Counted from the stretch's first letter, positions 15,668-59,324 are shown. The stretch is 64,000 nucleotides of DNA from Andalucia godoyi And28 (GCA_009859145.1 VRVR01000057.1:116259-180258), one strand, 5' to 3'. The notes: generated by a model not told the origin, from the letters alone. Program-made: numbers and translations.

Positions 15668-15715
<48 letters not shown>
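15668..15715. repeat. (CA)n microsatellite
   Basis: Directly visible. Confidence 0.9.
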
Positions 15716-15717
<2 letters not shown>

Positions 15718-15810
15718 GACACCGAGAGACAGAGGAAACACCGGTGTACTGGGTATTGTTTGTTCATCTTCCTATTCTCATCTCTTTCCCTCTCTTCTGT
15801 TGCGAGCATC

Positions 15811-17364
15811 ATGCAGGACATTACTCCGGATCAGGTCCAGCCGACGTCCTGTGTAGCCTGTCGAAGTCTCCACAAGAAGTGCGACCGCTCGGGTCCTCCG
15901 TGTCGTCGTTGTCTGCACGGAAGCCGAGAATGCGTGTACACAGGGAAAACTCCTGGAAGGCCACCAAAAGCAACGAGGAACTCGGAGGATGGAGATCGAC
16001 GAGACAGTGAAGAATTCTACGACGACGATGGCAGCATGCAACTTCATAATCATCATCATCATCATCAGCAGCAGCAGCAGCAACAACAACAACAACAGCA
16101 ACAGCACCAACAGCACCAACAGCACCAACAGCACCAACAGCACCAACAGCACCAACAGCACCAACAGCACCAACAGCAACAGCAACACAGTAGACACACC
16201 GGGGCTAAGAAGTCGCGGATTGCAAGTGCGCCTGCAGCCTATCGAGAACGCAGCAATGGCAGTATCCGGGACTCCCACTCCAAAATGAATCCATCCAGTT
16301 CGTCTTCGACCCCATCTTCCGGCTCGGGTGCAGCGAGTTCTCGACACGGGCAAAATGCGCAGGCGTTTTACAGGAGTATCTTCAACAATCCACCGAGTAC
16401 AGATTATAGCGTTCGCCCTCCCGCGACGAGTTGCACGCCGCCGCTGCACGCAGGAATGGACGGCGTGTCATCGGCTCCATCTTCAAACTCGTCCTTCTCA
16501 TCGATGAACCACATGTTTCTTCCAATGGCACCGTACGGCCAGCTTGTAGAGAATCATCTTGCGCAGGTTCAGTTGTTGCAACGTGCCATCCAGAATGCCG
16601 TGCTTTCGCGTGCAGTGGACAGCAGTTGTCGACATATGAACTATGGCTTGGATCCTATAGACGGTCAGCACACTAACGGCAGCAACACCAATAACAGCAA
16701 CACTTGTGGAATTAGCACTCCACAGGTCCCATTCTTATCTGTTTCGCCGCAGTTGCAATTCCCTTCCTCGGATCATTCGCGAATGCCGTTACAATTTTCC
16801 TTTCCCTCTGCGGGGTTGGTGGATCTGGTGTCTTCTTCAGGCACGCCGTCCTACGATACCTCCTTTCACAGTGCAAAAATGAGGCCGACGTCGACACCAC
16901 GGAATGCAAATGCAACTGCGAATGCGAGCGCAAATGCAAATGTGAATGTGAACGCGATTGCGGAGCAGCTGCTAGCGTTCGGCTCTTCGGATCAAATGGT
17001 CAACCCATTTTGCAGCTGCCATTCCTTCTCTATCGAAACATCCGATGTTCAAAACAGCGATGCAACCACACAACATTTCGGCCAGAACAATTTGAGGGCA
17101 TCAGAGCAAGAGCCGGAGCCTCGACATCCTTCTGTGGTCGGATTGCAGTACCAAAATAGCGGCGGTGGCAGTGGCGGTGACGGGTTTCCGCTGGCTGCCG
17201 TTTCGCCATTGATTCTGCCATCGAATCTCGGTGGCAGTTCATCTGTCAGCTTGCCGTTAAGCTCTTCGTCTCTTTCATCGCAGATGTTGCCCTTTATCAC
17301 CTCTGCGCATCTCAACAACACCCCAGATTCCTCCTCCAGACTCCGAATGTATGGCCGTGGATAG
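15811..17364 (+). CDS. Zn(II)2Cys6 (GAL4-type) transcription factor with polyQ/(QQH)n and low-complexity C-terminus
   Basis: CVACRSLHKKCDRSGPPCRRCLHGSRECVY fits CX2CX6CX5-6CX2CX6C. Start at ATG 15811. Confidence 0.88.
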   Translation: MQDITPDQVQPTSCVACRSLHKKCDRSGPPCRRCLHGSRECVYTGKTPGRPPKATRNSEDGDRRDSEEFYDDDGSMQLHNHHHHHQQQQQQQQQQQQQHQQHQQHQQHQQHQQHQQHQQHQQQQQHSRHTGAKKSRIASAPAAYRERSNGSIRDSHSKMNPSSSSSTPSSGSGAASSRHGQNAQAFYRSIFNNPPSTDYSVRPPATSCTPPLHAGMDGVSSAPSSNSSFSSMNHMFLPMAPYGQLVENHLAQVQLLQRAIQNAVLSRAVDSSCRHMNYGLDPIDGQHTNGSNTNNSNTCGISTPQVPFLSVSPQLQFPSSDHSRMPLQFSFPSAGLVDLVSSSGTPSYDTSFHSAKMRPTSTPRNANATANASANANVNVNAIAEQLLAFGSSDQMVNPFCSCHSFSIETSDVQNSDATTQHFGQNNLRASEQEPEPRHPSVVGLQYQNSGGGSGGDGFPLAAVSPLILPSNLGGSSSVSLPLSSSSLSSQMLPFITSAHLNNTPDSSSRLRMYGRG

Positions 17365-24400: not shown

Positions 24401-25858
24401 AATCTCCAAAGTCATACCTGGAAGATTCGTCGGAACAAACTGGCATTGTGACCGACCGGCTTCGATGCGGGAGAAATCAAGAAGATTGTTGACCAGACGC
24501 AGCAAACGACTTCCATTACGATTAACCATCTCCATGCGCTCTCGTTGCATTCGTGCAAGCGGATTCTGGGTGTCTGCAAGAGCATCTGCAAGGGGTCCCA
24601 ACATTAGATTTAATGGTGTTCGCAGCTCGTGAGAAATATTACTGAAAAATACAGTCTTGGCATGATCGAGCTTGGCGAGTTCCTCGGCCCGGCGCGTTTC
24701 GGTTTCGAATGCCTGCACAGAAGACGCAGCAGAAGACATTTGTCCGCAAATTGACGTGCAGAAGTCCATGAAGAATTTATCCAGAGGCTTCGCTGGATTG
24801 CTTCCAAAAATACAGAAACCAACAGGCGTGTTTTGCAGAGCCGAGTACAATGGGAAAACAACAGCCTTCGTCAAGGAAACCTGCGGATACGACTCCCAGT
24901 AGCCCTTGGGAACCCGATCATATTTGGACACATCGATAACCCATCCATTTCTGGACATTGTGTGGAGACCAAACTGCCAAGGGTCCGGCCCGTGGTCTCC
25001 CATCTTACCCGCCGTCGTCTGGGCAAAGAGAACCGTCTGCGGACACAGTGGATGGACCTGGGACGGGTCAGATGAAAAGCCAGCCGACGAAACCAACGTG
25101 GCAACGTCTGCGGATCCATTGGTTTGGTAGAAGAGTGCAAACGGAAAATCGAAGTTGTTTCTCTGCACAGCAAGAATTGCATTGCAAAACACGTCCCGGA
25201 CCGTCTTGCACCTCAGCAGTCTTCCCGACAGATCGTTCTTCGTCTGCAGCCTTCTTCCTTCTACAACCCTCTCTGTGGTTTCTTGCACGGCACAGAAGAC
25301 TGCGCAGACTTTGGACTCGTTCAGACCACCGGGAGAATACGAAAACGTCTGATACGCCTCCTCTAATCCGAAATCCGATCGATTCAGCAACATCATGCGA
25401 TCCTCAAAGGACCACGATATGCCCTTTTCCATGACATCCATGAGCGACCCTTCGATCTGGTCCCACACCTCGGGCCAACACAGACGTCCCGCAACGCCGA
25501 ATGCGAGATGCGGATGTTTCGCTCTGCAAATCGCAATGTATGGATCATTGTACAAAAACACCAAACTCGGACCGGCAAACAGACACATTGGGACTCCACA
25601 TGCAAGAGTTGCGCTCACCAGCGAGCACAGAGACTTCGGCCAGCTTTCCACGGGACCAAGCGGGCTTCGCTCCCAGTCAAAGCTTCGGGCATACCGGCTT
25701 GTTTCAAAATCTCCAGGAAACACTTCATGCAGCAATCGCTCTCTCCCCGACAATCCTGGATCTTTCAGGACATCCAGCATCGCGATACTGTGCTGCGGCT
25801 TCTTACTTGCATACTCGTCCATGATGCCAGGCTGCTCTTCTTCTAATTCGGGAAACAT
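21491..25858 (-). CDS. Dual hybrid histidine kinase PAS-GAF-HisKA-HATPase-REC-PAS-HisKA-HATPase-REC
   Basis: H-boxes NISHELRTPL and TICHEIRNPV; G-boxes GSGIGLAL and STGLGLPI; receivers LSDVMMPVMDG and FLDIEMPRLTG; N-terminal DWERSPLGPVESWP motif. Confidence 0.93.
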   Translation of the reverse strand: MFPELEEEQPGIMDEYASKKPQHSIAMLDVLKDPGLSGRERLLHEVFPGDFETSRYARSFDWERSPLGPVESWPKSLCSLVSATLACGVPMCLFAGPSLVFLYNDPYIAICRAKHPHLAFGVAGRLCWPEVWDQIEGSLMDVMEKGISWSFEDRMMLLNRSDFGLEEAYQTFSYSPGGLNESKVCAVFCAVQETTERVVEGRRLQTKNDLSGRLLRCKTVRDVFCNAILAVQRNNFDFPFALFYQTNGSADVATLVSSAGFSSDPSQVHPLCPQTVLFAQTTAGKMGDHGPDPWQFGLHTMSRNGWVIDVSKYDRVPKGYWESYPQVSLTKAVVFPLYSALQNTPVGFCIFGSNPAKPLDKFFMDFCTSICGQMSSAASSVQAFETETRRAEELAKLDHAKTVFFSNISHELRTPLNLMLGPLADALADTQNPLARMQRERMEMVNRNGSRLLRLVNNLLDFSRIEAGRSQCQFVPTNLPGMTLEIASLFQPLMEKAGLDFRVLLSSRLSQDVFVDRSMWEKIVANLLSNAFKFTFKGFIQVSISEDEKGAVLEVSDSGTGIPQPELPRVFERFHRIENSKGRNYEGSGIGLALTLELVRLHGGTIDVASELGCGTTFRVRIPFGFSHLAEQNVLHSAPALEDSSSSFHHNDLPVSTYRPSGAFVEEAATWMDDTPPQSEDDNDTSSASSDSADYGDATILLADDNPDMRSYVKGILKRYWKVDLAKNGQEALFLSEKKKYDLILSDVMMPVMDGFELMRRLRQNPFTCSTPVIILSARAGEEAKIEGLQKGADDYIVKTSFSAKELIARVKNHLELGRLRFHLENEVSKRTEELREANRNLELQIVSRKEIEKALAESELRFRVLASVAPVGILHTDRSGWVNYINPWVEKMFGSTVDTMNATWSSMIIDDDRQAAVDEWTDFLRQWESGQSATLHMTYRIVNKSMNPPLRWLLVQGMPELGERNIPCGFILTITDITEQKRIEEEQLTASKRQEEFQLERAKEAEYRKTQLEDFIDTICHEIRNPVSGTLFSLHQQSELISDIKRVLADEESKLLQRSVAASTSLEAAQRSVWKDLKGRLALIEDCVECIQVCSDHQMSVLGEVIELSKISSKGLLPHESWFPLSRVVQNVVLMYEQHFQSGDIRFTPCIQLEDDIEVFTDEVKLTQVLINLFSNATKYTPSQGYIVFSVSSTPSTANQPRTSRCVFSISNSGSGFDVGDLEGVFDKFSKVSRSHKFDGVSTGLGLPICKELTTLMGGTITAESDPGRETRFVAAFDWQSRISSPLSQPSSINTALTATTLPPSPQQAASDDADQKTGNTPRRLSFFAVGPKARILIADDNLISQKAMSRILSKSGFTCFVADDGVEAVEQYQKHRPDLVFLDIEMPRLTGTEACRQIRRIEKSESIAPVPIIALSGYSRDETQKEALEAGMNLYLTKPVRPAELERLLAVPK

Positions 25859-26599
25859 TTTTTTCTTCTTTCTTTCCCTCTTCTCCTTCTTCTTCTTTCG
25901 CGACACAGAAATTAGGGAAGAAAAAAAACCCGTGATTCCGACCGCAAAAGTGCGAACAGCCAACAAAAAACGAATAGCAAAGTAAGAAAAATAAAAAAAA
26001 AATATAAAAATTGCCAGACCCTTGGGAGGTTCTGGACTTTGGAGATTGGACGGGATGTGGGGGATTGGGGCACGGAGTCTTTCGGAGTTTAGACACGAGT
26101 GGACTCGCTAAGGGGAAAGAGGAAGGAAAAAAGGACAACTGGCAATCGCGATAGTTGATAGTTCGTCTGAAACAGGTCAAGACCACCAGGGTGTGCTAGG
26201 TGACGAAACCAGCGATCACCCCCATCAGTACAAGTTGGGCAATTCGAAGGAACGAAAGGTGATGTGGCCTGTCATGTGCCATGAAGCCTGCAGCTGCCAA
26301 TTCAGGAAAGTCGTCATTGGCGTTGTGATCACATTGAACGACGCATCTTAGCATGGCCTTTGTCCGTGTCCGAACAGAAACTTCCTGCCTTCTCCGTTGC
26401 AACCGTCCTTCCGACCGTACTGCATTCCTCCGACAGCCTCTGACTTCCCTTTTCAGACATAAGCCACTCGAGAAAGAAGCGGCCATGCTCCAATTGATGC
26501 TTCGCCCAACTGCGAGCAGAGAGTTGAATTATAACAATTATTGGATTGATTTTTCTTTTCGGCTGTGCTGCAGCCAAAATCGCAAACGATTAAGCAAGC

Positions 26600-43675: not shown

Positions 43676-43971
43676 AAAGGGGTTTTGTTTACGTGCGCTT
43701 CAGATTGCTTAAGCATATCGCAATTAGTGGAAGCGGTGGCTTTGGAAGAAGAAAGCCTTTTGAATGCGAGGAAATCTTCTCCGCGTTGCTGTTCTCTTCT
43801 CTTTTGTATTATGTGATTAAACTTATACTGGTTGTTTTGGGTTTTGCCTTTTTTTTTTTCTTTTCTTCTTGATTTCTTTTCATATTTGCTCCTATAATTC
43901 TCCTCTCCCAGGTGCGTGTGCGTGCGTGTGAGAAACAGGACAGGGAAAAGGAACAGCAAAAGAAGAGAAGG

Positions 43972-45726
43972 ATGGAAGGCAAGGCTGACGTTGACCGCAA
44001 GATCTCAGAGAGCCAGGCGTCGTATCTTTCGGACCTGAAGGCGATTTATGACGTGTCGTATGTGATTGACTCTGCTTCGGCGCTGCAGTGTTCGGACCTG
44101 TCTGACTCGGAAAAGGTGCGTGCGTACGAAGGCGTTGCGCTGTCTGCACTTCGGACGCTGGGCTCGTCGGGCGGCTCGCTACGTTCAATTCTGAACGACT
44201 CGGTGTATGCGCCGCTGTTCAAGGAGAAGTGTCAAAAGGTGGTTTTCAAGTACGACCACGAAGTTGCGACGGAGAATTCGGGGTCTTGCACAGTGCAGTT
44301 TTTCGGAGATGATGACGAGGACTCGACTCCGCGAATGGTGGTCTATTGGCTGCAAGGCGGGTTTGGGTATTCGTACACCTCTGTCGATCACATCATCCGG
44401 AACATTCTGTCATCGGAAATCAAAATGAAAAAGTTTGCAGAGGAGATCGTGCCTGCTGCGTCGGAGACCATCCAAAAGGCATTTGGACCGGGAAAGGCGT
44501 TCAAAATCGAGGTTGACACGAGATCCTTTGAGCGCGCAACTACCGATATGGACACGGCGATCCGCTACTTGACAGAGTGGAATGGTTACTACACCACTCA
44601 GAATCTGACCCGGGCAGTGTGCTCGATTGCGACGTACGAGGACGACAGAATTGTGGACGCCATTTCGGAGGATCTGAAGAAGGTGGTTTTCGCGCTGGAG
44701 CCAGGTACAGACACGGAGAAGAAGTCGTACGAAGTGGACGCAAAGCGCGGGAAGCTTACGCTCAAATTGGTCCTGGAGGCCGGGTCATCCAGCGGAATCT
44801 TTTCAGAAGAAGAGCTCAAGGCTGCCGTGATGGCCGCGGGTCTTGCAAAGCGTCCCGAACTGAGAATATTCCTTTTGGAAAGCGTTGTGTCCTCATATCG
44901 CGTGCGGTCGTGGGGCTATCTGAACGAGGTTGAAGATCTGCTTTGCAGGGGCGACTTGTTCTTCAAGGAGAATGCCGAGGAGCGGAAGGTGGTGGATTCA
45001 AAGGTCAAGTCCTCCGATCCTTCCGAGCGCGTTCTCAAAACATTTGACAAGATCATCAAAGCAAATGCAAAGGGAGACAAGGAGAAGCGACGGGTGGTCG
45101 TCACGAACAAGCACGTTGTTTCTTGTGAAATCAAAGGAGATTCCATCAAGGATTCAAATTGGAAGGTGTTTGATCTTTCATGGATCATTGCCATTGACAT
45201 CTGCGCGGTTCCCTCCAAGGTTCCCGGCCAGAGCGCTAGCTCGATGGTTCAGATCTCGTTCTCGCAAGCTCCAGAGAAGAAGAAGGGCCCGTCGCTGCCC
45301 GGAGTCAAGCTTCCGGGAGTCAAACTGCCCGGAATTCCGATGCCATCCATCAATGCGCCGTCCGTCAATCTGCCGTCCGTCAATCTGCCGTCCGTCAATC
45401 TGCCGTCCGTGAACCTGCCTTCTGTGGACCTCCCGACCATGGATCTTCCGGATCTCGGAATCAACTGGCGACGCAAGAAGGAGCCCAAGCCCAAGCGCTT
45501 CCATCCTGCGACCAAGTACGACTCCATTGCAAAGTACCAGCTTAACGTGTACCCGGACGGTCTCTCAACCGCGGAGGGAAACGCACTCATCGAAGAAATC
45601 GCGTGGTCCGTGTACGCTGCATACTCGGCCAACACCCACCGCGTCGACTACGCACCGTTCTATCTCCCAACAAAGACCGAGTACCCAGAGGGCACCACCA
45701 TCGAGGACAAGCGTCCTGCCGCGTAG
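43972..45726 (+). CDS. Uncharacterised protein: two degenerate N-terminal repeats, PH/TH1-like segment, (PSVNL)n repeats
   Basis: Long clean ORF; TFDKIIKANAKGDKEKRRVVVTNKHV resembles myosin TH1/PH-like strands; 15-nt tandem repeat at about 45358-45450. Confidence 0.7.
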   Translation: MEGKADVDRKISESQASYLSDLKAIYDVSYVIDSASALQCSDLSDSEKVRAYEGVALSALRTLGSSGGSLRSILNDSVYAPLFKEKCQKVVFKYDHEVATENSGSCTVQFFGDDDEDSTPRMVVYWLQGGFGYSYTSVDHIIRNILSSEIKMKKFAEEIVPAASETIQKAFGPGKAFKIEVDTRSFERATTDMDTAIRYLTEWNGYYTTQNLTRAVCSIATYEDDRIVDAISEDLKKVVFALEPGTDTEKKSYEVDAKRGKLTLKLVLEAGSSSGIFSEEELKAAVMAAGLAKRPELRIFLLESVVSSYRVRSWGYLNEVEDLLCRGDLFFKENAEERKVVDSKVKSSDPSERVLKTFDKIIKANAKGDKEKRRVVVTNKHVVSCEIKGDSIKDSNWKVFDLSWIIAIDICAVPSKVPGQSASSMVQISFSQAPEKKKGPSLPGVKLPGVKLPGIPMPSINAPSVNLPSVNLPSVNLPSVNLPSVDLPTMDLPDLGINWRRKKEPKPKRFHPATKYDSIAKYQLNVYPDGLSTAEGNALIEEIAWSVYAAYSANTHRVDYAPFYLPTKTEYPEGTTIEDKRPAA

Positions 45727-47418: not shown

Positions 47419-50136
47419 TCAAGAGTCCTTTCTGGTTGTTCTGCACATAAAGGAGATAATTTCCTTCTTTGCAGCGTTTTTCAGCTGGCTGCTTCCAAAT
47501 TCCAGTAAATCATCTTTCGTCTGTTCGTCCTCCATGAATTCGTCAAACCACCCAAGACTCATGACCATTTCTACGGTTTCCGGAGCGAAGAACGCCAGCT
47601 GCTGAAAGTCCATCTTCAGTCCTTTCTCGCGCTCCTTCAAAAATTCCAGCAGCAAGTCAAGACAAACAGCCCGGATTTTGGGTACCAACACATCACACTC
47701 GTTCTGCTTGCAGAATTTCACAGCGTCCCGAATGAATGGGGCCAAGAACAGGGCTGTCGCAAGGTGGTTTGAGGCAGACGAGTATCGCAGCAGGCACAGA
47801 CTGCAGTAATACATTGCCGTAGGACTTTTCCAGTGCGATATCAGCAGATTGCGGAGAAGCGTCAACATTCCACCGAGATCGAGTACTTGGGCACGAAATT
47901 TGGACCCGTGAGCAGTGAGTTTGAACAGTATGCTCGAGACACTGATTGCACAAGCAAGAGTAAGATCAGCGTCATGCAGCCGGCCGAGTTCCTTGACGAC
48001 CGTCAGCGTGCCGGCATCGATTAGAAACTGGTGGAACGCCTCTTCCTGGTCCTGCTCCGTACACCTATCCAGAAACTGCAAGACAGCGCCAAATATTGAT
48101 GCACGCTCCGCCGGGCTCGACGCAGTATTCGAAAGCGTCCACTGGCAGACGCTGGACAAGACAAAAAATGGCGGCCGGAGCTCGGTTTGTGAGCAGTACA
48201 GGTTCTGAAGCATGCAGACACAGTTCACAATCAATACGTCGTTGGTCCGTGCAACCCGCGACACCCAGTCGCAGACGTCGCTCGTGAAAGAATGACTTCG
48301 ACAGAACACTCGGAACCGCGGACTGAAGCGAGTCAGACTCTCCATCCATGTGATGATATGGCCTCCCCTGCCTTCGTCTCGCGAGCAAACGCCGAACGCG
48401 TGCACCACGAGGTCTTGGATCCGAATTGCGTCGCTGTCGGACGCATCGATGACGAGCTCTGGAAAACGTTCAGAAATTGAATGCAACATTCCAGCAACAT
48501 TCTTGCAGGATGGAGCGCTCGAAAACACGTGGGGAGGAAGCGACAGCACAACACGGAACAAGTCTGCACATGCTTCACGAGAGAGTGCGTGCCCCAGAAC
48601 CCAAAGACCACCGGTCGAAACCCTGAGGCAGCTGTCGTCGAGTTGATGGACCAGCAGCGAACGGATCAACGAGTCCACAAGCTTCGGTCTGCTGCTCACG
48701 TGGTGCAGTGCACCAGAGGATTTTGTGCAGACTTCGTACATGAACAGACATACTCTCGAAAGCACCTCCGCAGAGTCAGCAAACAAGCAAAGAGTCTTTT
48801 CAATGATGTGTGCAATTTCCGGTGATATCCGAGAAATTTCAAGGCTTCCAAAATGCTCACGATGCCGATGGATGCACAGTATGGTTGCCGACACGGCTGC
48901 GGCATCCACATCGGGTTGGCTCACAAATACACCCAGAAACCTGATGGATGCTTTCGCAAGAACCACGCTTGTCCAGCCCATCGTTTGTGCGAGGTCCAAG
49001 CCACAGAGCACCGCGGATGCATCGCAACGGTCTACCGATTGCGCGCTCAACACTTGTGCAATGCAAGACGATCCAACCTCCGCATCGAGGGCTCCAGACC
49101 TCCAGGTGTTTGTGTCCTTGCTGTTCGTGGCTAGCTCACAAGCAGTCGCCACGAGGTTTCCGCAATGTGGAAACTCGTGCAGAAGGACAGCAAACGCATC
49201 AGCCGAAATGCTCGTTTCTCCGCTGAGTTTTTGCATCCATTCTTGCAGCAGGAACTCGTCACTGTATGCATGCAACGAGTCGCAGTCGTGATCGTGGTCG
49301 AGGTCATTGTCCTCCTCCTCCTCATCATCATCAGCACAGTGGTGGAGGTGATGGTGATCACTATGGTGTCGCTGCGGTAAGAATGAAGCAGCGTACATCT
49401 TGTCGACGAGATCCATCGCCCACGATTCGGCACGGACCTTCCTGCTCCACGTGAAGGGCAGCTCGCCTTCCTCGATCCACCGCGGCAGCTTTGCAACAGG
49501 AACATTTGAAAATGGAGCCACGCCAGACGCGATCCACCCAACGATGCACGCAATTCGCTGCAATGGATGCAACAGAAAGCGCCAAAAAGACCCTGTCTCG
49601 CCCTTGCCATCGCCCTCACCCTCGCCCTCGGACCTCTTCTCATCGGATCCAGCTGCAGCCCTTGAAGCAACAAACGGGACGTACTTGCATATGCCGTTCT
49701 GAATCACCAAGCGATCCGTCGTTATGCTCTGTGCGGCGTCTATGCAGTGGCAAATGACAAATACACTTGTGATCGTCAACAGCGGATTCTCCAACGGCGC
49801 CTTGCGATGCTCGGCTGACCTTGCCATCAGCTTCCCGATCCCACCGTCCGGGACCAATGGATACACCAACATGACAGGCGGTCCACCGCCACAATCATCA
49901 TTAACATGGGCAACTGTATTATCAGAAAGTGAATCTTGGACGATCCCGAGCGGACGGAGCACCCAAGGAAGCCGCAGCATCCAGCCCGTGCGATTGTAAC
50001 AAACAGTCGTAGTAGTCCTCCGTCGGTCCACGCTGCACGGCACAACAAACATCGGCGCCGTGTCCAGATCGTATATCGGAAACCCGTGTTCTGAACGCGA
50101 CACGAACCGCAACCTCGACCCGCATATGACATTCAT
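47419..50136 (-). CDS. Large hypothetical protein; armadillo-like helical C-terminal half, possibly degenerate kinase-like N-terminus
   Basis: 905-aa open frame with helical Leu/Cys-rich repeats; VMLVYPLVPDGG weakly resembles kinase subdomain V. Confidence 0.55.
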   Translation of the reverse strand: MNVICGSRLRFVSRSEHGFPIYDLDTAPMFVVPCSVDRRRTTTTVCYNRTGWMLRLPWVLRPLGIVQDSLSDNTVAHVNDDCGGGPPVMLVYPLVPDGGIGKLMARSAEHRKAPLENPLLTITSVFVICHCIDAAQSITTDRLVIQNGICKYVPFVASRAAAGSDEKRSEGEGEGDGKGETGSFWRFLLHPLQRIACIVGWIASGVAPFSNVPVAKLPRWIEEGELPFTWSRKVRAESWAMDLVDKMYAASFLPQRHHSDHHHLHHCADDDEEEEDNDLDHDHDCDSLHAYSDEFLLQEWMQKLSGETSISADAFAVLLHEFPHCGNLVATACELATNSKDTNTWRSGALDAEVGSSCIAQVLSAQSVDRCDASAVLCGLDLAQTMGWTSVVLAKASIRFLGVFVSQPDVDAAAVSATILCIHRHREHFGSLEISRISPEIAHIIEKTLCLFADSAEVLSRVCLFMYEVCTKSSGALHHVSSRPKLVDSLIRSLLVHQLDDSCLRVSTGGLWVLGHALSREACADLFRVVLSLPPHVFSSAPSCKNVAGMLHSISERFPELVIDASDSDAIRIQDLVVHAFGVCSRDEGRGGHIITWMESLTRFSPRFRVFCRSHSFTSDVCDWVSRVARTNDVLIVNCVCMLQNLYCSQTELRPPFFVLSSVCQWTLSNTASSPAERASIFGAVLQFLDRCTEQDQEEAFHQFLIDAGTLTVVKELGRLHDADLTLACAISVSSILFKLTAHGSKFRAQVLDLGGMLTLLRNLLISHWKSPTAMYYCSLCLLRYSSASNHLATALFLAPFIRDAVKFCKQNECDVLVPKIRAVCLDLLLEFLKEREKGLKMDFQQLAFFAPETVEMVMSLGWFDEFMEDEQTKDDLLEFGSSQLKNAAKKEIISFMCRTTRKDS

Positions 50137-50435
50137 CGACGGACACCACGACCCCGCCCTCTCCTTGCTCTGCTCTCTATGCTACTATGCTGTGCATGCA
50201 GTTGCTTTGGTGGTTCTGTGCTCGAATGAAATGCACAGTTCGGAGATTTTTGTCGGGGAGATTTGTTTCCACGTTTTTCCGCTTGAGCCTTGACGGACGC
50301 GTGATGCTTCTCGGGCTGGGATCGAGGCCTTTGTTTCAGCCGTTGCGACGATTTTGGGATCGTTTTTCCGAACCAAAATCAACACAAACGAGTTACGGTT
50401 ACCGAGTGCATAGGACACGGAGCGCGGTCGACGAG

Positions 50436-52907
50436 ATGGAACCCGACGAAGAGCTTCCTTTTGACGTGGACAAGCTTGCGCGAGCGATTTTCCGAGAATA
50501 CATTGCGCGTCACAAGTACACAAAGACCAAGGATGCATTTGACATTGACGTCGTATGTCGTTTTTTTCCCCCCCTATACATCAGTAATCAATTCCGATGT
50601 TCTTCTTTTTCTCTTCCTTTTTTGCCTCCTCCTTCTTTAATTCTTGGTATTAATTGTGGCGAGTTGGATGGTTGCTTACGGTGCGGTGTGGTGTGCAATG
50701 CAATGGGATGTGGATGTGTGGAGCAGCCGAGGTCGAAGGATGACTTGAGCAGTCGGGCGGAGATGTGCCAGTTGCTGGACATTGAAGCCGAGTTTGAAGC
50801 CAAGAAGAAGAAACACGGAAAGGACATGCCGTCGTGCTTGGAGATCCTATCCGAGAAGATCATCCGCAACATCCTGAAGTCCGAGCAGGATGCCTTGATA
50901 CAGGAGCAGAGGGCAGAGGTGGAGGCCAAGAAGAAGGCCACTGCTGCATCGGTTCCGGTTCCGGTGCCAGCATCTGTGCCTGTGCCAGTTGCGGTGCCAG
51001 TTACGGCTGGGAATGCGACAGCCGGTGGGCCGGGGGCCGCGCTGCAGAAGAAGCAACTTCGGCGCGAGGACTTTTTGTGCATGCGCAAGCGATCCGAGAC
51101 GATCATGCGGCGAGATGGTGACATTGCAGGACAGCAGTTCGTCATTGACGATGTGGAGGACTGCAGGATTTGTCTGCTGGATTACTCAGCGCAGATCAGC
51201 GTGGACTTTGCAAAGAACTGCGAGATCATTATTGGGCCGTGTGAAGGATCGGTGTTCTTGCGCGACTGCGAAAACTGCACGTTTGCAATCGCGACGCGGC
51301 AGTTTCGATGCCGGGACTGCGTGAACTGCACCGTCTTTTTGTATTGCGCTACGGAGCCCATTATTGAGACATCAACAGGACTGAAGTTTGCTCCGTGGAA
51401 TGCGGCATACAAGCACCAAGGGGTGCATTTTGAAAGAGCCGGACTCGACCCAGGTGCCAGTCAATGGGACAGAATTTTCGACTTCAACAAGGACCAGGAC
51501 GTCAAAGGCACGCTTACGCATTGGGCCAAACTCGGCACTGACGATTTCAAGGTGTTTGAGTTCGACTATGGCGAGAACGTTGTCAAAGGCGGAATCACGC
51601 TCGATATGATCAACTCGGCAGAGGATGGTCTTGGGGTGGACGAGGAGGATATGGACGTTGGTGACCTTGCAGAGGAGGAAAACCTCCCGCTTCCGGACAA
51701 CGAATCGAAGCAATCTGCGGTAACCCTGGACGTGTTCTTCCAGAATGGCAATGCACAGAGCGTCGCAGATGCGGATCGTGCGCGGAAGGACACCAACAAG
51801 AACGAGAGCGAGCCTGCCGTTGCAGCGGTGCTGGAGGAGGACATTCTGGAAGTCGAGGATATCGACGAGGATGACCTTGACAATTCTCTGCCGCTTCCAG
51901 AGGACTCCGGTCTTCGACAGCAGCGAAGGATTGATCGATTTGAAAGCCACGCATTGAAACAACTCATCTTTGGACCCCAATCCAGACTGGTTCCGGATGC
52001 ATGGACACATCAAAAATTGACGGAGTTTGTTAAGCCTGTTGGAAGCATTGGAAACTGGGCGATCAATCAGGAGGAGGGAGGCCCGTGCGGAATTCTTGCT
52101 GCTGTCCAGGCGTTCGTGTTGCGAGAACTGCTGTTTGGATCGAAAAGAACGCAGCTCACGAAGGTGTCTGCTGCAGACGCGAGAAAGGCTCTTGTCAGCG
52201 CCCTTGCGTTCATTCTCGATCAGATCCGAGAATCGTCGCTCTCCTCCTCGTTTCATGTGGTGCAAGGCCGGGGTGCTGACTTCGCAGCCTATTCTGTGTT
52301 CTCGTTCTCCTCGCTGAAGGATGTTGTGGACTTTCTGGCTGCGGCACCGGATATCTGGGCACTCGAGTTTCTTCTCAGCATGATTTTGACGCGCGGCGGA
52401 CCGGACGTCATCAAGAAGGAGGACTTTGATGACCCGGGTGCCACGTTGATCGGATCGCATTCGTACGGTACTCAAGAGCTCGTCAACCTGGTACTGTTCG
52501 GTCGCGCACATTCGCAGGTTTTTGATGGTCAGGACGACTCTCACGGAATCATGCTTCGGGGATGTCCCATTCGCTCTGAAATCGGCTTTCTGACGCTACT
52601 GGAGTACTATCAGAATGTCCAAGTGGGATCCAATCTGAAGAACCCGAAACTTCCCATCTGGGTGATCTGCTCGGAGTCGCATTATTCCGTGTGCTGGTCG
52701 CATAGTGCTAAGTCTGCGGAGGCTGTTTTGGAAGAGGACGAGTTGTGGTACTATGATGGTCTTGCTCGCATGACAGAGCTTGTCCACTGGACTGTGAAAG
52801 CGAACAGCACATTTGACGGGGAATCGGATTCTCCTCTTGAAAACGTTCTCCGGACCCGGTGGACCGCAGCTGAAGTGGATTGGAACGGTGCTGATCGAAT
52901 TCTGTAA
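50436..52907 (+). CDS. MINDY4-like deubiquitinase with internal RP2/TBCC domain; exons 50436-50552 and 50727-52907
   Basis: N-terminus FREYIARHKYTKT...PRS resembles MINDY4. TBCC beta-helix QQFVIDDVEDC...GPCEGSVFLRDC...RQFRCRDC. MINDY catalytic QEEGGPCGILAAVQA and SESHYSV. Confidence 0.87.
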   Translation: MEPDEELPFDVDKLARAIFREYIARHKYTKTKDAFDIDVVCRFFPPLYISNQFRCSSFSLPFLPPPSLILGINCGELDGCLRCGVVCNAMGCGCVEQPRSKDDLSSRAEMCQLLDIEAEFEAKKKKHGKDMPSCLEILSEKIIRNILKSEQDALIQEQRAEVEAKKKATAASVPVPVPASVPVPVAVPVTAGNATAGGPGAALQKKQLRREDFLCMRKRSETIMRRDGDIAGQQFVIDDVEDCRICLLDYSAQISVDFAKNCEIIIGPCEGSVFLRDCENCTFAIATRQFRCRDCVNCTVFLYCATEPIIETSTGLKFAPWNAAYKHQGVHFERAGLDPGASQWDRIFDFNKDQDVKGTLTHWAKLGTDDFKVFEFDYGENVVKGGITLDMINSAEDGLGVDEEDMDVGDLAEEENLPLPDNESKQSAVTLDVFFQNGNAQSVADADRARKDTNKNESEPAVAAVLEEDILEVEDIDEDDLDNSLPLPEDSGLRQQRRIDRFESHALKQLIFGPQSRLVPDAWTHQKLTEFVKPVGSIGNWAINQEEGGPCGILAAVQAFVLRELLFGSKRTQLTKVSAADARKALVSALAFILDQIRESSLSSSFHVVQGRGADFAAYSVFSFSSLKDVVDFLAAAPDIWALEFLLSMILTRGGPDVIKKEDFDDPGATLIGSHSYGTQELVNLVLFGRAHSQVFDGQDDSHGIMLRGCPIRSEIGFLTLLEYYQNVQVGSNLKNPKLPIWVICSESHYSVCWSHSAKSAEAVLEEDELWYYDGLARMTELVHWTVKANSTFDGESDSPLENVLRTRWTAAEVDWNGADRIL
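50553..50726 (+). other. Spliceosomal intron (174 nt, in frame)
   Basis: GTATGT donor, T-rich interior, CAG acceptor; removal gives DIDV-PRSKDD, restoring the MINDY4-like N-terminus. Confidence 0.75.
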
Positions 52908-53919: not shown

Positions 53920-54129
53920 TCTCTTTTACGGACTACCATACACAATAACCACACAAGCCTCCTAAGCTTCAACGTTCCGAGTTTCGAGTTCCCGACCCTC
54001 CTTCAATCGTCACCACGCATCATCAACAGCACATCAGTCATCACACATCAGTGCGGACTCAAGAACGGGGTAAAAAGAATGTCCTGCGTCCTGCGGGATG
54101 CGCAAATGGACAAGTACGGTTTCCTCACG

Positions 54130-54512
54130 CCTACATTGTACACTGAACATGCATATCTACGAATGGACATGCATATTCAGTCTTGCATCCCGTTGCCGGG
54201 AAGGGGATAGGCCCCCAACACGCCTCACGGCGTTCTTCAGATAAATGCTCCGCGCTCCGTTCCCAATCTCGATCAATCGGTGAGCCACTTTCTCAGCGTG
54301 ACACGTTGTTCCTGAGAAGGGTGCATTTTTGATTCTGACGGCCCTAGCAGTAGGTGTAGTGACACGTGGTCTCTTAGGAGGTCTGCGGGACCTAGGAGGC
54401 CCTGTATCACGAATTCCTGTGAAACAAAACGTGCTAGTGTCGGCCAGTATTGACCGTGTCTGTTTATGTATACTTCCATCCGCATGCATGACAATGACGT
54501 GTTATTATTCAG
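54130..54512 (-). mobile_element. Internally deleted Fanzor2/IS607-TnpB element, subfamily A, copy 3
   Basis: Same deletion junction as 32831-33194; 3' end and 100 bp beyond match 46200-46423. Confidence 0.85.
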
Positions 54513-54570
54513 CGGCAAACAGCCAAGCATAATAAAGGTCGCGTATGGAGAAACGGCATGATGGGCGTTG

Positions 54571-57500
54571 CTACTGACTAGCGTCGACGGGGGAGTGAAA
54601 CGGATGAATGTAGGCGTCGACCAAGGGCAGAATGCATTCCGCAAATTGGGCAAACGAAACGATGTCCTCGGTGCGATGGTTCATGATTGCAGAGTGGCTG
54701 AATTCAAACGCGCTTGGGATGCCCGGGTAATCATGGGGCACATCGACTGCAAATTGATGCCCAAGAAGAAACATCATTTCGCGCTGTTGCGCATTCGAGA
54801 ATCCATACAGAAGGAACGCATATCGATCAATCGCGCAAAACACGACGAGGAACGAGTGAAAAACTTGGAAAAACCGTGCATGGGCCTGCACAACATCCAG
54901 AGACAGTAATGACGACGGGTGAACTTCGGTGACGCCGAACCCGGGGGGCTTCATCTTTGGGTCTATTTCAATGAGCGTTCGCTGCATCTCCATGCATCGA
55001 GCAACCAACTGCACCATAACGGACCGCTGCATAGGAGATGCTGCGGCTTTGATGGGGAATTCCACAACTCCAACAGTGGTATAGTTGCGAAGCCCATCGT
55101 TGGATCGCCGCGTCCCCCCGCAGTGCTCGTCGAAAAACGACCGAACGGAAGAAACCATAAGACCCAGCACAAAGTAGATGTGCGGCTCGGCGTACGTGGA
55201 AAGATGTGGATACCACTCGATGCGCACCTGCTCGGTCGACACGCGACCATCTCTCGGAGTCCATGCTAGCGTCTTTTTGCAAGGGATTCCTCCAGAGAAG
55301 TCCAGAAAAAATCTGTTTCGTCTGTAGTGGAATTCACGACGTTGGATTTCTGCAATGAGAATCTTCGGGAGATGACGACGAAACCGCACAAGACTTTTTG
55401 TCATCCAGGCAGAATACAGCATGTCCGTGCTCTCTCCAAACGTGTTGCGCAGTTTCATCTGCAGATCGGCTGGTAGTTCTGAAAATCGCTGTTTTAGCCA
55501 CGCTGCAGCCTCAGAATGAGGATCAACTGGAGCAAAAACAGGATGCGCCCAGACACACAGTCGGCTTGGCAGCTCGCCGTAAATCCACCGGCCCATATCG
55601 CTGGCCTTGGATAGCGCAACCAGCACAGAAGACAGATTCGCACTCATCTTTTCAATATCCTTGCATGAATGGTGATACACGGAGTCCGGGGTCATCTGCG
55701 GCCCTCGGGAAATTTCAAACAGTGACTTCTCTCCAACACAGTCGGAAAGCGAGGAGTACACATCATAAACGCCAGTTCTGGAAGGCAGCATATCCAGAAG
55801 GCCGTGCCAATGGACCAAGTCCTGCGCGACTGGAAGCACATGCCTGAAGTCATTCGCACAACACGATACCTCTGCTGCGTCGCACAGCGGCAGTGCAATG
55901 CGAACACAGAGGCCGTTGGCATCCTCTGGCGATCTTTCGGTCACGAGAACAACTAACGAACCAGCATAGTCCGAAAATGATTTCCAGGAGGAAAAGAACA
56001 ACAAGGGCTGCGCACATAAATGCGAAAGCAGCAGTACCGGCACAGACGTCTTCGACCGCCTCGAGAACTCTGCCAACTTTAGAATTACATCTCGTTGTGG
56101 ACTCTCACGGGGGTCAGAGCCACCATCTTCTGAATACGCAACTGCTGCGGGAAAGCTGTATAGTCCAAGCACCACGTTCAGCGCACTGTTGATGCTCGAA
56201 AACGCTTGAGTGCCCATGGCGCATGGGTGGACAAGTGCAAACGAATCGTAGGGATGGGCTGATGAACCGCTGATGCAAAAGTCTCCGCTGAGCACGTCGA
56301 TCTGCTCATCTGGCATGCACAACCTGCAATGGGATATGATCCAATCTGTGGAGTATCGATGCTGAGCGCAGGCAGCAACACTTGAATGTATCATCCTTGG
56401 ATGGTCGCAAGCATAGGATGAACCGTCGTCCACTTCCGGGTCGAACTGCAATACCTGACAGGCAACCGAGTCCAGAACCTCATCAAAATTCGCATGCAAA
56501 TCTCCTGCCATCACCATCCTTGGAGAAAATTGCCACAACGAGGTCCGCGAATTGCCAAGAACAGGATGCGTGATCACGGTCACCAGAGAATCGACGTCAG
56601 CATCTCGAAATATCGAATTTTGCAGATAGATCATGTCACGAATTCTTGCGTACCGATGCAGCAATTGACGGACAAACTGCGCGTGAATGTTCGTCAGCCA
56701 GGCCGATGGCGTGACAAAGCAATACACACCGTACGCAGACAGCCGAAACAGACCGAGAACAATGAACAGATAGTACAGGTCTGCCCTCCCGTTTGTCGAT
56801 ACGCCAACGTCTCGAAAACGCATCGCAACTGTTGCATCTGGGAACACACTCGTTTCCGAGCAGCACAGCGAAGACGACTGCGCAACATACGGCGGATTTG
56901 CGAGAATAAAATCAAACAGCTTGCCGCTCCAGTGTGCAACGTCATCATTTTCTGGAACTGCAAATGGTCTCCGTGATCGCAGAATCTGCAGGGAATCGAA
57001 GCAATGCAGCTTCATGGACTTCAGGATGAACGAAAAACGCTGGGCTCGAGCTCGAACGACAAGGGGCAGCATCATAAACATGCAATTCATGCAGGCCAGC
57101 TCATGCGCACATCTGTCCCGGTCGACGCCGTAAATTTCTTCGCAAAGCTGGTCGACAACATGGCACCAGTCCACATCGATTGTTGGGAAGCGACCCATGG
57201 ATTGCACATCATGGTGAATGAACTGCACTATCGCATGGATGTAAGCACCAATGAAAACACCGGAGCCCATAGCGGGGTCGAGGAAGGAGCGTACGCAATA
57301 CCGGAACGGAGGAGTAGGATTCAGACGACGAACTGCACAACTTGCGTTTCTTGTTGAGATGTTCACCATCATCACCGCGACGCTCCTTGGAGTCATATAT
57401 TGTCCAAGAGCCCGACGCATGTTCTTCATCTGAAATTCAAGCTTTGAAGAAGGACCCACGTTCAGTGATGCGAGCAGGTCATATTCACAGCCGTGGAAAT

Positions 57501-58206
57501 CCGTCACCAAATCACAAAAGTCCGCGACAGGAAGCTCCATGTTCCTGAGAAGCCATTCGCACATAGCCAGATGTTCCGACACCAGTGTTGGTGAAATCAA
57601 GTGCTCATAGCTGTCTGCATGATCGTGGTTGTCGGCAAGAAACCGATGGATCCAGAAGAATGGGTTTGCATCGGAAACAAGAAAGGAATCCCACAGCGTG
57701 CCTCGCAGGTCCGCTTCATTTGGCGCAAGGACTCCTAGCAAGCATGCGTACCGCCTGCTTGTCTGCTGAGTAGCATGGGAAGCGAGAGTGAAGCACGCGC
57801 TGTTGAGCACGGCCATGATTACCAAGTGTCGCGCGGCGCGCGCTAGATACAGCCAGCAAGCGCCTTCGATCAGCGCTTCATGATGGGGAAGGCAACCCAG
57901 GCTGGCCAGTCCGTCCGGTGCGGTTTTTTGACCGCACCGGAGCCGGCAAAAGGACTGCAGAAGCCGGAACGACGACGCCCGGATCGTTTCGATTGGTCCC
58001 TCGTTGCATTTGAGCAAACCCGACACAACCACCACGCACTCGACAAACGCAGATGCCAGACGATCTGAGACATCCGGAACCGAACGCAGGATCCGAGTTC
58101 CCAAGGAGATCTCTGTGCAGAGCATATGAATAACTTCAATGTACCGTCTTTGCATACACTTCATCACCGCACATTTTGGCATTGCCGCCGAACGCTCCTC
58201 GCGCAT
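54571..58206 (-). CDS. Type IIG/Eco57I-TaqI-like N6-adenine DNA methyltransferase with C-terminal target-recognition domain; no nuclease domain recognised
   Basis: RRALGQYMTPRSV, motif I FLDPAMGSGVF, IYGVD, motif IV FILANPPY, DLYYLFI...CFVTPSAWL, IFRDADV; TaqI_C-like YFVLGLMVSS...EFPI. ATG at 58206; the ORF-track start is TTG. Confidence 0.85.
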   Translation of the reverse strand: MREERSAAMPKCAVMKCMQRRYIEVIHMLCTEISLGTRILRSVPDVSDRLASAFVECVVVVSGLLKCNEGPIETIRASSFRLLQSFCRLRCGQKTAPDGLASLGCLPHHEALIEGACWLYLARAARHLVIMAVLNSACFTLASHATQQTSRRYACLLGVLAPNEADLRGTLWDSFLVSDANPFFWIHRFLADNHDHADSYEHLISPTLVSEHLAMCEWLLRNMELPVADFCDLVTDFHGCEYDLLASLNVGPSSKLEFQMKNMRRALGQYMTPRSVAVMMVNISTRNASCAVRRLNPTPPFRYCVRSFLDPAMGSGVFIGAYIHAIVQFIHHDVQSMGRFPTIDVDWCHVVDQLCEEIYGVDRDRCAHELACMNCMFMMLPLVVRARAQRFSFILKSMKLHCFDSLQILRSRRPFAVPENDDVAHWSGKLFDFILANPPYVAQSSSLCCSETSVFPDATVAMRFRDVGVSTNGRADLYYLFIVLGLFRLSAYGVYCFVTPSAWLTNIHAQFVRQLLHRYARIRDMIYLQNSIFRDADVDSLVTVITHPVLGNSRTSLWQFSPRMVMAGDLHANFDEVLDSVACQVLQFDPEVDDGSSYACDHPRMIHSSVAACAQHRYSTDWIISHCRLCMPDEQIDVLSGDFCISGSSAHPYDSFALVHPCAMGTQAFSSINSALNVVLGLYSFPAAVAYSEDGGSDPRESPQRDVILKLAEFSRRSKTSVPVLLLSHLCAQPLLFFSSWKSFSDYAGSLVVLVTERSPEDANGLCVRIALPLCDAAEVSCCANDFRHVLPVAQDLVHWHGLLDMLPSRTGVYDVYSSLSDCVGEKSLFEISRGPQMTPDSVYHHSCKDIEKMSANLSSVLVALSKASDMGRWIYGELPSRLCVWAHPVFAPVDPHSEAAAWLKQRFSELPADLQMKLRNTFGESTDMLYSAWMTKSLVRFRRHLPKILIAEIQRREFHYRRNRFFLDFSGGIPCKKTLAWTPRDGRVSTEQVRIEWYPHLSTYAEPHIYFVLGLMVSSVRSFFDEHCGGTRRSNDGLRNYTTVGVVEFPIKAAASPMQRSVMVQLVARCMEMQRTLIEIDPKMKPPGFGVTEVHPSSLLSLDVVQAHARFFQVFHSFLVVFCAIDRYAFLLYGFSNAQQREMMFLLGHQFAVDVPHDYPGIPSAFEFSHSAIMNHRTEDIVSFAQFAECILPLVDAYIHPFHSPVDASQ

Positions 58207-59324
58207 TTTTCTTTCTTCCCACGTCAGCGGACAGCCTGCGCGCGCAACAAGCAAAAAAGAACTGTCCCAGAATACCAAGAAAAGAACAAGGCACTAATCC
58301 ACTACTACACCCCAAATGCGACAAGCCGTTACGCACAATGCACGCATTACAACGATTGTATTACGTTACTGTCCCTCTTTTTACGAGGAGGGGGAAAAAT
58401 GCCAAACACCGATTCGTTTGCAGAGGAGAAAGAAAGACGTTTCCTCGTGCGTGGCCGTGCTCCCACAGGCAGTGCGAAATGACTGCATCTGACGGATACC
58501 GATACCTGTCGCGAGAAACGCCTGGTCGATGCGGCGGCACGGCCGAGGCTGGCTGGGAGGATCGTTCTCCTGACGGCCGAGCGGATGCTGCAGCCGGAAA
58601 CGGATGCATTGCCAGTGCATTCATGTCCGCGCAGCAGCCTGAATTCCGCTGTCCAGAAAACACCTGCTGTACAACGCATCCAGAGGGCAGTCGATGGGCC
58701 GTCGATTTCGCACATGAATCCTCTTTGCGTCCCCGTTTTGTTTTCATTCTCTTTTTCTATTTACTTCTTACAATTAGGCCGGTCAGCTTCTTATGAGATG
58801 CATGCTTTGTTTTCATTCTGAGCATGGATCTGAACGACCGGCTGAGATAGACCAGTGAGTAAGCTATCGAACTCGCACTGATCCGTTGCTTGAATTCGCT
58901 AGTAGACACTGGGAAAAACACACCCAACTCCAAGCACACCTTACACCCTTTTGCGCATGAGAAACATTCACGATATGCACTTTACACCTTTAAAAAAAAC
59001 ACGTACTTGAGCCCCGGCATAGCTGGTTTGAGCTTGTTAGAAAGATCCCTCTATGGAGCCATGCGATGTTTTTGCCTTTGACGAAAGGTGCTGCTTGAGG
59101 GTTCGATAGATAAAGCAAAAACAGAAGACAACAGAGAGAAATGAAAAAATGTGATGAAAAATTCTACTTGACTACGGTAAGAAAATCGTATTGTTTGAAA
59201 ACGGTCGTCAGTCAGTTCACTTCAGCTCATATTTCCTCGCCACTTTCAGTTTTGTCTCTCTTCTCGCAATCATTCCTTGCAAAGGCCTTTTTTTTTTTGG
59301 AGTGTGGAGGGTGGGTCGAGCGAG

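Follow-up and report, generated by a model that had tools for sequence, protein, structure and literature searches.

The window analysed here is a stretch of 64,000 nucleotides from the genome of the free-living jakobid Andalucia godoyi And28 (GCA_009859145.1, VRVR01000057.1:116259-180258), in which a gene on the minus strand encodes a predicted DNA N6-adenine methylase of the Eco57I/TaqI type. The use of N6-methyladenine (6mA) by eukaryotes and the nature of its writers are still debated; the accepted eukaryotic writers are the MT-A70 complexes, which methylate ApT symmetrically, and, to our knowledge, fungal MetB is the only proven writer of asymmetric, motif-linked 6mA. Using domain and profile searches, distance trees and a structural model, we found the gene to be intact, adapted to its host and surrounded by ordinary eukaryotic genes, and we consider it fairly probable that its product is related to the eukaryotic group of methylases that contains MetB.

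Gene and reading frame

The open reading frame (ORF) spans 54571..58278 on the minus strand and comprises 1235 open codons; counted from the first ATG, at 58206, it encodes 1211 amino acids (aa), a model identical to the protein database entry (P0001). The features of the gene and of its flanking spacers are collected in Table 1. No internal stop was found in the methylase frame against 27-41 in each of the five other frames over the same span, which indicates that this frame has been maintained. When scored with a codon model of the neighbouring genes, frame 0 was the best in all five segments of the gene (N-terminus, methylase, linker, recognition domain and C-terminus), and the intact ORF of about 1.2 thousand codons that had been described in a previous sequence-only reading of the window was thereby borne out, its 1211 codons being uninterrupted and coding throughout. 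The GC content at the three codon positions and the codon-adaptation index were those of 16 other genes of the window, the base composition showed no break at the gene, and the methylase gene is fully adapted to the codon use of its host. No further copies of the methylase were found within the window using tblastn, and an internal duplication that this search had suggested proved to be an artefact. The N-terminus of the protein begins with acidic residues. Mitochondrial targeting was also considered and received no support; in those parts of the supplements of the A. godoyi mitochondrial proteome paper that were available, neither gene identifiers adjacent in number to those of the neighbouring genes nor terms such as DNA methylase or restriction were present, which is weak evidence.

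Table 1. Features of the methylase gene and its flanking spacers, in window coordinates
Feature	Coordinates	Strand	Basis or remark
Complete coding sequence, 1211 aa + stop	54571..58206	-	stop codon 54571-54573; open upstream to 58278
N-terminal region, aa 1-235, lineage-specific, predicted helical	57502..58206	-	no Pfam match; predicted local distance difference test (pLDDT) mostly <50
Methylase domain, predicted gamma-class S-adenosylmethionine (SAM)-dependent N6-adenine, aa 236-565	56512..57501	-	Pfam, M.TaqI alignment, pLDDT 80-95, hhalign 99.8%
Motif X GQYMTPRSVAVMM	57367..57405	-	translation; G-Q-x-x-T-P columns invariant in four eukaryotic proteins
Motif I LDPAMGSGVF, SAM-binding loop	57253..57282	-	translation; D and G invariant in 82 sequences
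Motif II IYGVDRD, acidic residue ending strand 2	57115..57135	-	translation, alignment
Motif III HCFDSL	56989..57006	-	translation, alignment
Motif IV FDFILANPPY; catalytic NPPY 56887-56898	56887..56916	-	translation; N-P-P invariant in 82 sequences
Motifs V-VIII ADLYYLFIVLGLFRLSAYGVYCFVTPSAW, including CFVTPSAW (VIII)	56698..56784	-	translation; matching M.TaqI stretch aligns
Linker / insertion, aa 566-825 (260 aa), lineage-specific	55732..56511	-	coding (frame 0); no Pfam or hhalign match; low pLDDT
Target-recognition domain, TaqI_C / MTase-S type, aa 826-1075	54982..55731	-	profile 22.5 bits, hhalign 92.7%, Foldseek
C-terminal helical region, aa 1076-1211	54574..54981	-	contains conserved helix IDRYAFLLYGFS (54796-54831)
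Spacer, methylase stop to PIG-L gene, non-coding	53920..54570	.	contains ORF 54157-54489 (-)
1.1-kb spacer shared with divergent PTH2 gene	58207..59324	.	presumed promoter region

Methylase domain and motifs

In the Pfam search, the Eco57I family (PF07669) matched aa 381-557 of the 1235-aa ORF with E 7.8e-13 and 49.3 bits against a cut-off of 25.3, and the N6_Mtase family (PF02384) matched with E 2.5e-9 and 37.4 bits against a cut-off of 20.4. There was no match to MT-A70 (PF05063) or to the oomycete DAMT family (PF10237), and even at E up to 1 Pfam gave just Eco57I and N6_Mtase. The NCBIfam matches were all weak and sub-threshold (MADS2, PglX of bacteriophage exclusion (BREX) and Alw26I-type methylases), with BREX-1 PglX scoring 20.7 bits against an equivalog cut-off of 500, while in PADLOC the type II and type IIG methylase models matched weakly. 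Among the solved structures, the best sequence match was M.TaqI, in an alignment that spans FDFILANPPY/FDLILGNPPY and CFVTPSAWL/VFVVPATWL. Translation of the exact coordinates gave the motif order X - I - II - III - IV (NPPY) - V-VIII followed by the recognition domain, all of them intact, with the landmarks GQYMTP, DPAMGSG, GVD, FDSL, NPPY and FVTPSAW in this order. By class, the protein is a gamma-class Eco57I/TaqI-type DNA N6-adenine methylase, its activity being predicted. The sequence-only reading had proposed the same class, which agrees with the Pfam scores above the cut-offs and the ordered motifs; its position for NPPY (56887-56898) was exact on translation, and motif I DPAMGSG, which it had put at about 57259-57283, occupies 57259-57279.

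Recognition domain, unique regions and predicted structure

Pfam TaqI_C gave no match with the whole protein or with four fragments. Though Pfam was silent, the TaqI_C-like recognition domain that had been noticed in the sequence is upheld by a profile of relatives and by structural superposition. Several relatives produced a second weak BLAST match at aa ~1002-1106 of the Andalucia protein, a stretch that corresponds to the end of the TaqI_C domain in those relatives. A profile of the C-terminal parts of 81 relatives, from which the query was left out, gave 22.5 bits (E 7.5e-7) with the C-terminal part of the query, compared with 0.2 bits for the best of 200 shuffles; the aligned stretch takes in PKILI, YFVLGLMVSS and EFPI as well as the terminal helix IDRYAFLLYGFS, which aligns with the iD..Vy.LYgL helix of the relatives. 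The landmarks of the domain are LFEISRGPQ, PKILIAE, YFVLGLMVSSV, in which MVS replaces the usual LNS, and VVEFPIK, and its first half rests on motifs read by eye. An AlphaFold2 model that was based on an 82-row alignment had a mean pLDDT of 59.9 and a predicted template modelling (TM) score of 0.68, with values of 80-95 in the methylase blocks and moderate confidence in the recognition domain. The best Foldseek match of this model was the DNA-bound orphan methylase CamA (E 3e-14, target TM-score ~0.66, ~540 residues), followed by M.BseCI and BrxX/PglX, and the model superposes on CamA and M.BseCI across both the methylase and the recognition domains.

Neither the N-terminal parts of 74 relatives nor the alignment of the eukaryote clade described below showed homology to the N-terminal region (aa 1-235). 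A likeness to the helical domain of the MmeI/PglX-type relatives was hinted at by MAFFT, and a profile test gave it no support. No nuclease was detected in the protein, as neither the whole sequence nor its fragments matched a nuclease family, PD-(D/E)xK included, in Pfam. AlphaFold2 predicted, with low confidence, an N-terminus that is all-helical and has no strands, and this prediction together with the lack of a family match means that no nuclease is detectable there. The absence of a recognisable PD-(D/E)xK nuclease, as stated in the sequence-only reading, is therefore corroborated, the N-terminus being also unlike that of the relatives.

Relatives

When 1.84 billion cluster representatives were searched exhaustively with HMMER, 377 proteins were returned at E <=0.001, only three at 1e-10 and only the query itself at 1e-30, and every match was confined to the methylase domain, at ~25-30% identity; no orthologue of the Andalucia methylase was found in any sampled organism and no other jakobid protein was present among the matches. 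A word-index protein search, which returned the query itself and one weak match, was uninformative. Several of the top matches were eukaryotic proteins of a size similar to that of the Andalucia protein. The eukaryotic relatives include proteins of Diphylleia rotans (1245 aa) and Gefionella okellyi (1142 aa), both from transcriptomes and previously unreported, as well as proteins of the Mucoromycota/Glomeromycotina fungi Gongronella, Cunninghamella, Mycotypha, Rhizopus, Calcarisporiella and Cetraspora. The fungal relatives are mutually 30-42% identical over their full length, and the accessions of the fungal top matches appear among the MetB homologues of Lax et al. 2024 (PMC11258239), the supplements of which do not mention Andalucia, Diphylleia or Gefionella. 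A further MetB-like methylase of 912 aa (P0003; locus L002, 926-3664) was found on contig JANRHI010042640.1 of assembly GCA_025450795.1 (37% GC, highly fragmented), and as it adjoins split kinase and leucine-rich repeat gene fragments, it can be regarded as eukaryotic.

In viral contigs, the protein itself had no match, and its profile found three weak phage-like loci with 24-25% identity; in the phage genome collection, type IIG enzymes of haloarchaeal viruses were found at 22% identity. A viral vector for the methylase gene was considered and set aside, there being no sign of one in the viral contigs or the phage genomes.

Some observations concern the relatives themselves. The Diphylleia and Gefionella proteins have their closest relative in the protein of GCA_025450795.1. 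Another relative of these two, of 1491 aa, is encoded in a read-archive contig (L006, 161-4636; Logan ERR1352903) beside an ankyrin-AAA_5 gene and an McrBC gene, surroundings that resemble a working restriction-type neighbourhood. In Gongronella butleri, KAI8071771.1 (P0019) and KAI8071773.1 (P0038), together with KAI8071769, KAI8071772 and KAI8071774 of the list of Lax et al., have consecutive accessions and lie on one 933-kb contig, which suggests that these MetB-family paralogues form a tandem gene cluster.

Placement relative to the MetB group

The placement of the protein was analysed using neighbour-joining distance trees of the methylase domain with 89 or 212 sequences. In the smaller tree, all 15 eukaryotic proteins, that of Andalucia included, formed one clade (bootstrap 87/100). 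The larger tree, of all 212 usable sequences, recovered the eukaryote clade again and placed the Andalucia protein as the sister of the remaining 15 members, and in 125 of the 200 bootstraps of this set the protein fell within an all-eukaryote clade. Eight residues of the Andalucia protein (Q269, Y322, P381, R488, C496, S501, S540 and L541) are near-universal in the eukaryotic set and occur in 0-15% of the presumed prokaryotic set; both the eukaryote-only clade and the rarity of these residues in prokaryotes depend on the presumed prokaryotic labels. The Andalucia protein scored 157.5 bits on a hidden Markov model (HMM) of the eukaryote clade from which it had been left out, compared with 156.1 bits on a prokaryote HMM, whereas 96 of the 97 held-out sequences scored lower on the eukaryote HMM, by at least 38 bits (mean 168). 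The one sequence that did not, P0243, comes from Rhizopus, belongs to a fungal MetB cluster and was mislabelled as part of the prokaryote set. Moreover, hhalign against the alignment of the eukaryote clade gave a probability of 99.8% for the methylase and 92.7% (E 4.3e-7) for the recognition domain with the C-terminus, and nothing for the N-terminus or the linker.

In the trees, the Andalucia protein lies outside the fungal MetB clade, and it is ~25% identical to the fungal proteins, in the methylase domain only. It has the features of a MetB-type protein, i.e., an N6_Mtase domain with a recognition domain, a eukaryotic nuclear gene and no detected nuclease. Because of its position outside the fungal clade and the lack of full-length alignability, it should be regarded as a relative of the fungal MetB family and not as a member. 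Taken together, these data make a common ancestry with the MetB-like eukaryotic group moderately probable rather than established.

Chromosomal surroundings

Pfam annotation showed that the neighbours of the methylase gene are ordinary eukaryotic genes that encode Mo25, a TBCC-MINDY3/4 protein, PTH2, a PIG-L deacetylase, a PSI-repeat protein, a Y-family polymerase, an AAA ATPase, a hybrid histidine kinase, an ABCD-type transporter, RasGEF, Ras, CRAL/TRIO, CFAP97 and a fatty-acid hydroxylase. Since the TBCC-MINDY protein of the window is 100% identical to EukProt ANDGO_07355, the window is nuclear DNA of A. godoyi, and the earlier statement that the methylase lies among clearly eukaryotic genes is in agreement with both the annotation and this identity. 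The genome of A. godoyi is ~20 Mb in size, compact and nearly intron-free, which fits the content of the window; the paper describing it does not discuss the methylase gene (PMC7050145). No report linking Andalucia to 6mA or DNA methylases was found in the literature that was searched.

The sequence-only reading had also placed a Fanzor remnant downstream of the methylase, a proposal that found no support. The minus-strand ORF in the downstream spacer had no Pfam or PHROG match and no tblastn match in 50,697 phage genomes, in each case at E up to 10; no RuvC-like, OrfB zinc-ribbon or TnpB match was obtained, and its codon score of -0.18, compared with +0.15 to +0.32 in real genes, is that of non-coding DNA. 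No terminal inverted or long direct repeats were found around the methylase gene, which is not visibly part of a mobile element. The Pfam scan of the window, which covered 20 of its 28 ORFs of >=250 aa and several smaller ones, revealed no restriction-like gene, no brx gene and no other gene of a defence system, and a search for non-coding RNAs in the window gave no Rfam match.

The spacer between the methylase gene and PTH2 contains no ORF with a coding signature and had no Rfam or family match. It is about five times as long as the 217-nt mean spacer reported for the A. godoyi genome, and a 14-nt direct repeat, TTTGTTTTCATTCT, is present in it at 58737 and 58806.

Comparison with known methylases

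Enzymes of this kind have been described in eukaryotes. Iyer, Zhang and Aravind 2016 distinguished six eukaryotic clades of methylases of the M.EcoKI/M.TaqI group, of which clades 5 and 6 of Group-2, from rhizarians and basal fungi, are fused to an MTase-S recognition domain (PMC4738411). Lax et al. 2024 gave the name MetB to the fungal enzyme, which combines PF02384 with an MmeI-like recognition domain, and showed that the deletion of metB in Mucor lowered 6mA by 70-75%, abolished the asymmetric AAA(6mA)CA motif and increased the sensitivity to hydroxyurea; the loss of MetB affected replication-stress tolerance, lipid content and virulence, with no simple link to transcription (PMC11258239). 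The same authors confined the family, "with some exceptions", to prokaryotes and early-diverging fungi, and proposed a transfer from bacteria (PMC11258239). The sequence-only reading was thus right in that the protein belongs to a bacterial class distinct from MT-A70, but it overstated the novelty of the finding, as eukaryotic TaqI/EcoKI methylases (PMC4738411) and MetB (PMC11258239) were already known. The Andalucia protein is a highly divergent new case of an already known kind, the recognition-domain-bearing N6-adenine methylases of eukaryotes that derive from restriction-modification, of which MetB has been characterised.

MetB of Mucor lusitanicus and other early-diverging fungi is likewise the product of a eukaryotic nuclear gene and a methylase of the PF02384/Eco57I class, has ~1000-1200 aa and a recognition domain and lacks a nuclease; its methylase and its recognition domain with the C-terminus are homologous to those of the Andalucia protein, with which it grouped in the distance trees. 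The differences are that the identity of ~25% is confined to the conserved cores, that the N-terminal 235 aa and the 260-aa linker are unique to Andalucia and that the host belongs to the jakobids (Discoba), which have not been mentioned in connection with the MetB family. Clades 5 and 6 of Iyer et al. have the same fusion of a TaqI/EcoKI methylase with MTase-S, an origin in restriction-modification and eukaryotic hosts, but they were reported from rhizarians and basal fungi only, at least one Reticulomyxa copy keeps a nuclease domain, and no jakobids, malawimonads or collodictyonids are listed (PMC4738411). CamA of Clostridioides difficile, M.BseCI and M.TaqI share the motif order, the C-terminal recognition domain and the single chain without a nuclease; these enzymes are bacterial, have 420-580 aa and are 11-14% identical to the Andalucia protein in the structural alignment. 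The latter owes a length twice that of the CamA type to its two unique regions.

The type IIG/IIL enzymes MmeI and Eco57I and the BREX proteins PglX/BrxX belong to the same methylase family, have the same type of recognition domain and a similar length, and methylate one strand. Unlike them, the Andalucia protein has neither a detected PD-(D/E)xK nuclease nor homology to their N-terminal helical domain, and, in contrast to PglX/BrxX, it is encoded among eukaryotic housekeeping genes with no brx gene recognised nearby. The MT-A70 methylases (AMT1/MTA1 complex) and the oomycete DAMTs (PF10237) resemble the Andalucia protein in the proposed product, nuclear 6mA, but are unrelated families with DPPW/DPPY/DPPF motifs and another fold arrangement, and AMT1 methylates ApT symmetrically. 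A link to the oomycete DAMT methylases was considered and ruled out, as these form the separate family PF10237.

Origin and function of the methylase

In the reading that we regard as rather probable, the gene is a resident nuclear gene of A. godoyi, and its product is a single-chain, nuclease-less gamma-class methylase that is either an early-diverging member or the sister of the MetB-containing eukaryotic group. This group (fungal MetB, Diphylleia rotans, Gefionella okellyi and GCA_025450795.1) would have derived from prokaryotic type IIG/IIL-like enzymes. The protein is most likely a motif-specific, one-strand 6mA writer, and a sequence-specific role of this kind is the best that we can infer for it. 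As a single polypeptide, it would read a short DNA motif through its recognition domain, as do M.TaqI, CamA, MmeI-type enzymes and MetB; the target adenine would be flipped into the NPPY pocket and a methyl group passed from SAM to the adenine N6. Because a single recognition domain would act on a non-palindromic site, one strand would be marked, and the product would be motif-specific, strand-asymmetric 6mA in nuclear DNA with no paired restriction activity.

Several observations weigh against this reading, and some of them would be expected if the gene had instead entered the jakobid lineage by a separate transfer from a prokaryote or phage, as a type IIG/IIL, BREX PglX-like or orphan methylase, its grouping with MetB being an artefact of divergence. 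The exact eukaryote clade was recovered in just 77 of the 200 bootstraps with 212 sequences, and support for it is moderate, comes from distance trees only and may partly reflect the attraction of fast-evolving sequences; moreover, 196 tree sequences are prokaryotic by presumed label, being mostly metagenome or read-archive proteins. BLAST to the prokaryote-like P0036 and P0008 gave 88 bits, equal to or above the 73-81 bits for the eukaryotic proteins, and a fungal-only HMM gave 110 bits compared with 156 for the prokaryote HMM. Identity to every relative is ~25-30% and covers the methylase domain plus a weak recognition-domain match, transcriptomes are the only source for Diphylleia and Gefionella, and the matches include no other jakobid protein. 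A departure in the LNS motif of the recognition domain, described below, also counts against the reading. Half of the AlphaFold2 model has pLDDT <50, the N-terminus and the linker among it, and for this reason the argument from the lack of a nuclease fold is weak on structure alone. Iyer et al. counted at least 13 independent eukaryotic acquisitions of such enzymes. Against a separate transfer stand the recovery of the eukaryote clade in both trees, the at least eight signature residues that the protein shares with the eukaryotic sequences and that few of the presumed prokaryotic ones have, and all the held-out presumed prokaryotic sequences, which fit the eukaryote HMM relatively far worse than the Andalucia protein does. 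Furthermore, full codon adaptation means that any transfer must be old. We consider a separate transfer possible, with a probability clearly below even.

With regard to function, the fold may have been kept while DNA methylation was lost, so that the protein would be an inactive DNA-binding or scaffold protein or would have been retargeted to RNA or protein, like PCIF1 of the same TaqI/EcoKI group. In the LNS motif of the recognition domain, Val takes the place of the near-invariant Asn, the two regions without relatives make up ~40% of the protein, and several eukaryotic descendants of the TaqI/EcoKI group have turned into RNA enzymes or become inactive (PMC4738411). Such a loss is nonetheless distinctly unlikely: the SAM-binding and catalytic motifs, which inactive derivatives usually lose, are all intact, the recognition domain that reads DNA has been kept, as has the C-terminal helix of the DNA enzymes, and MetB, the nearest characterised relative, acts on DNA. 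The protein could also be the modification half of a self/non-self system in which an unlinked nuclease or a 6mA-sensing partner attacks the foreign DNA of prey bacteria or viruses, given that the prokaryotic family members are mostly found in type IIG restriction-modification, BREX or MADS systems and that one relative (P0133) adjoins McrBC-type genes. We nevertheless hold a self/non-self role to be very improbable, as neither a nuclease domain in the protein nor a restriction-like gene among the scanned ORFs of the window was detected and MetB in Mucor shows no such role. That the gene does not belong to the host at all, being bacterial contamination, the product of a chimeric assembly or a passenger of a mobile element, for instance the proposed Fanzor-bearing transposon, has next to no probability. 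The domain family is overwhelmingly prokaryotic, and a short TnpB-like string had been seen downstream in the sequence-only reading, but the window is unbroken, eukaryotic genes flank the methylase gene within 1.1 kb on either side, and the GC content, third-position GC and codon adaptation of the gene are indistinguishable from those of its neighbours. No prokaryotic protein is closer than ~30% identity, the flanks have neither terminal inverted nor long direct repeats, Pfam, PHROGs and tblastn gave no TnpB/Fanzor signal for a downstream ORF with a non-coding codon score, and the viral contigs hold just three weak phage-like matches.

An intact, host-adapted jakobid relative, together with those from a malawimonad and a collodictyonid, widens the range of the MetB enzyme type, and it is now testable whether asymmetric 6mA exists outside fungi and whether the family is older than the fungal-transfer scenario. 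These findings suggest that the enzyme type is wider in eukaryotes, and possibly older, than described. A more far-reaching proposal, which we find doubtful, is that the MetB-type methylases with a recognition domain are one eukaryotic lineage present in Discoba (Andalucia), malawimonads (Gefionella), CRuMs (Diphylleia) and early fungi, four groups that fall on different sides of most proposed roots of the eukaryotes. If this were true, motif-specific one-strand 6mA writing would be either very old in eukaryotes or have spread between them, it would be no fungal novelty gained from endosymbiotic bacteria, and the mark would be present in the nuclear DNA of A. godoyi.

Other features of the window

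Other genes of the window also showed uncommon features. The ORF at 999-8069 (+) encodes a 2356-aa megasynthase with, in this order along the protein, AMP-binding, PP-binding (two matched stretches, one of them at aa 654-718), ketosynthase, acyltransferase and class I/II aminotransferase domains and a C-terminal PH domain, a polyketide-synthase-like architecture that is unusual for a jakobid. In a 714-aa ORF at 15220-17364 (+), the Zn(2)-Cys(6) binuclear cluster domain known as 'fungal' was matched with E 2.6e-6, and the hybrid histidine kinase, encoded by a 1491-aa ORF at 21491-25966 (-), has two HATPase and two receiver stretches and a PAS domain. Two ORFs with a good coding signature, at 47419-50136 (-, 905 aa) and 43912-45726 (+, 604 aa), matched no Pfam family. 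Finally, the ORF at 50187-52907 (+), which corresponds to ANDGO_07355, combines a TBCC and a MINDY-3/4 deubiquitinase domain; its database model has 765 aa compared with the 906 aa of the ORF from the first ATG.

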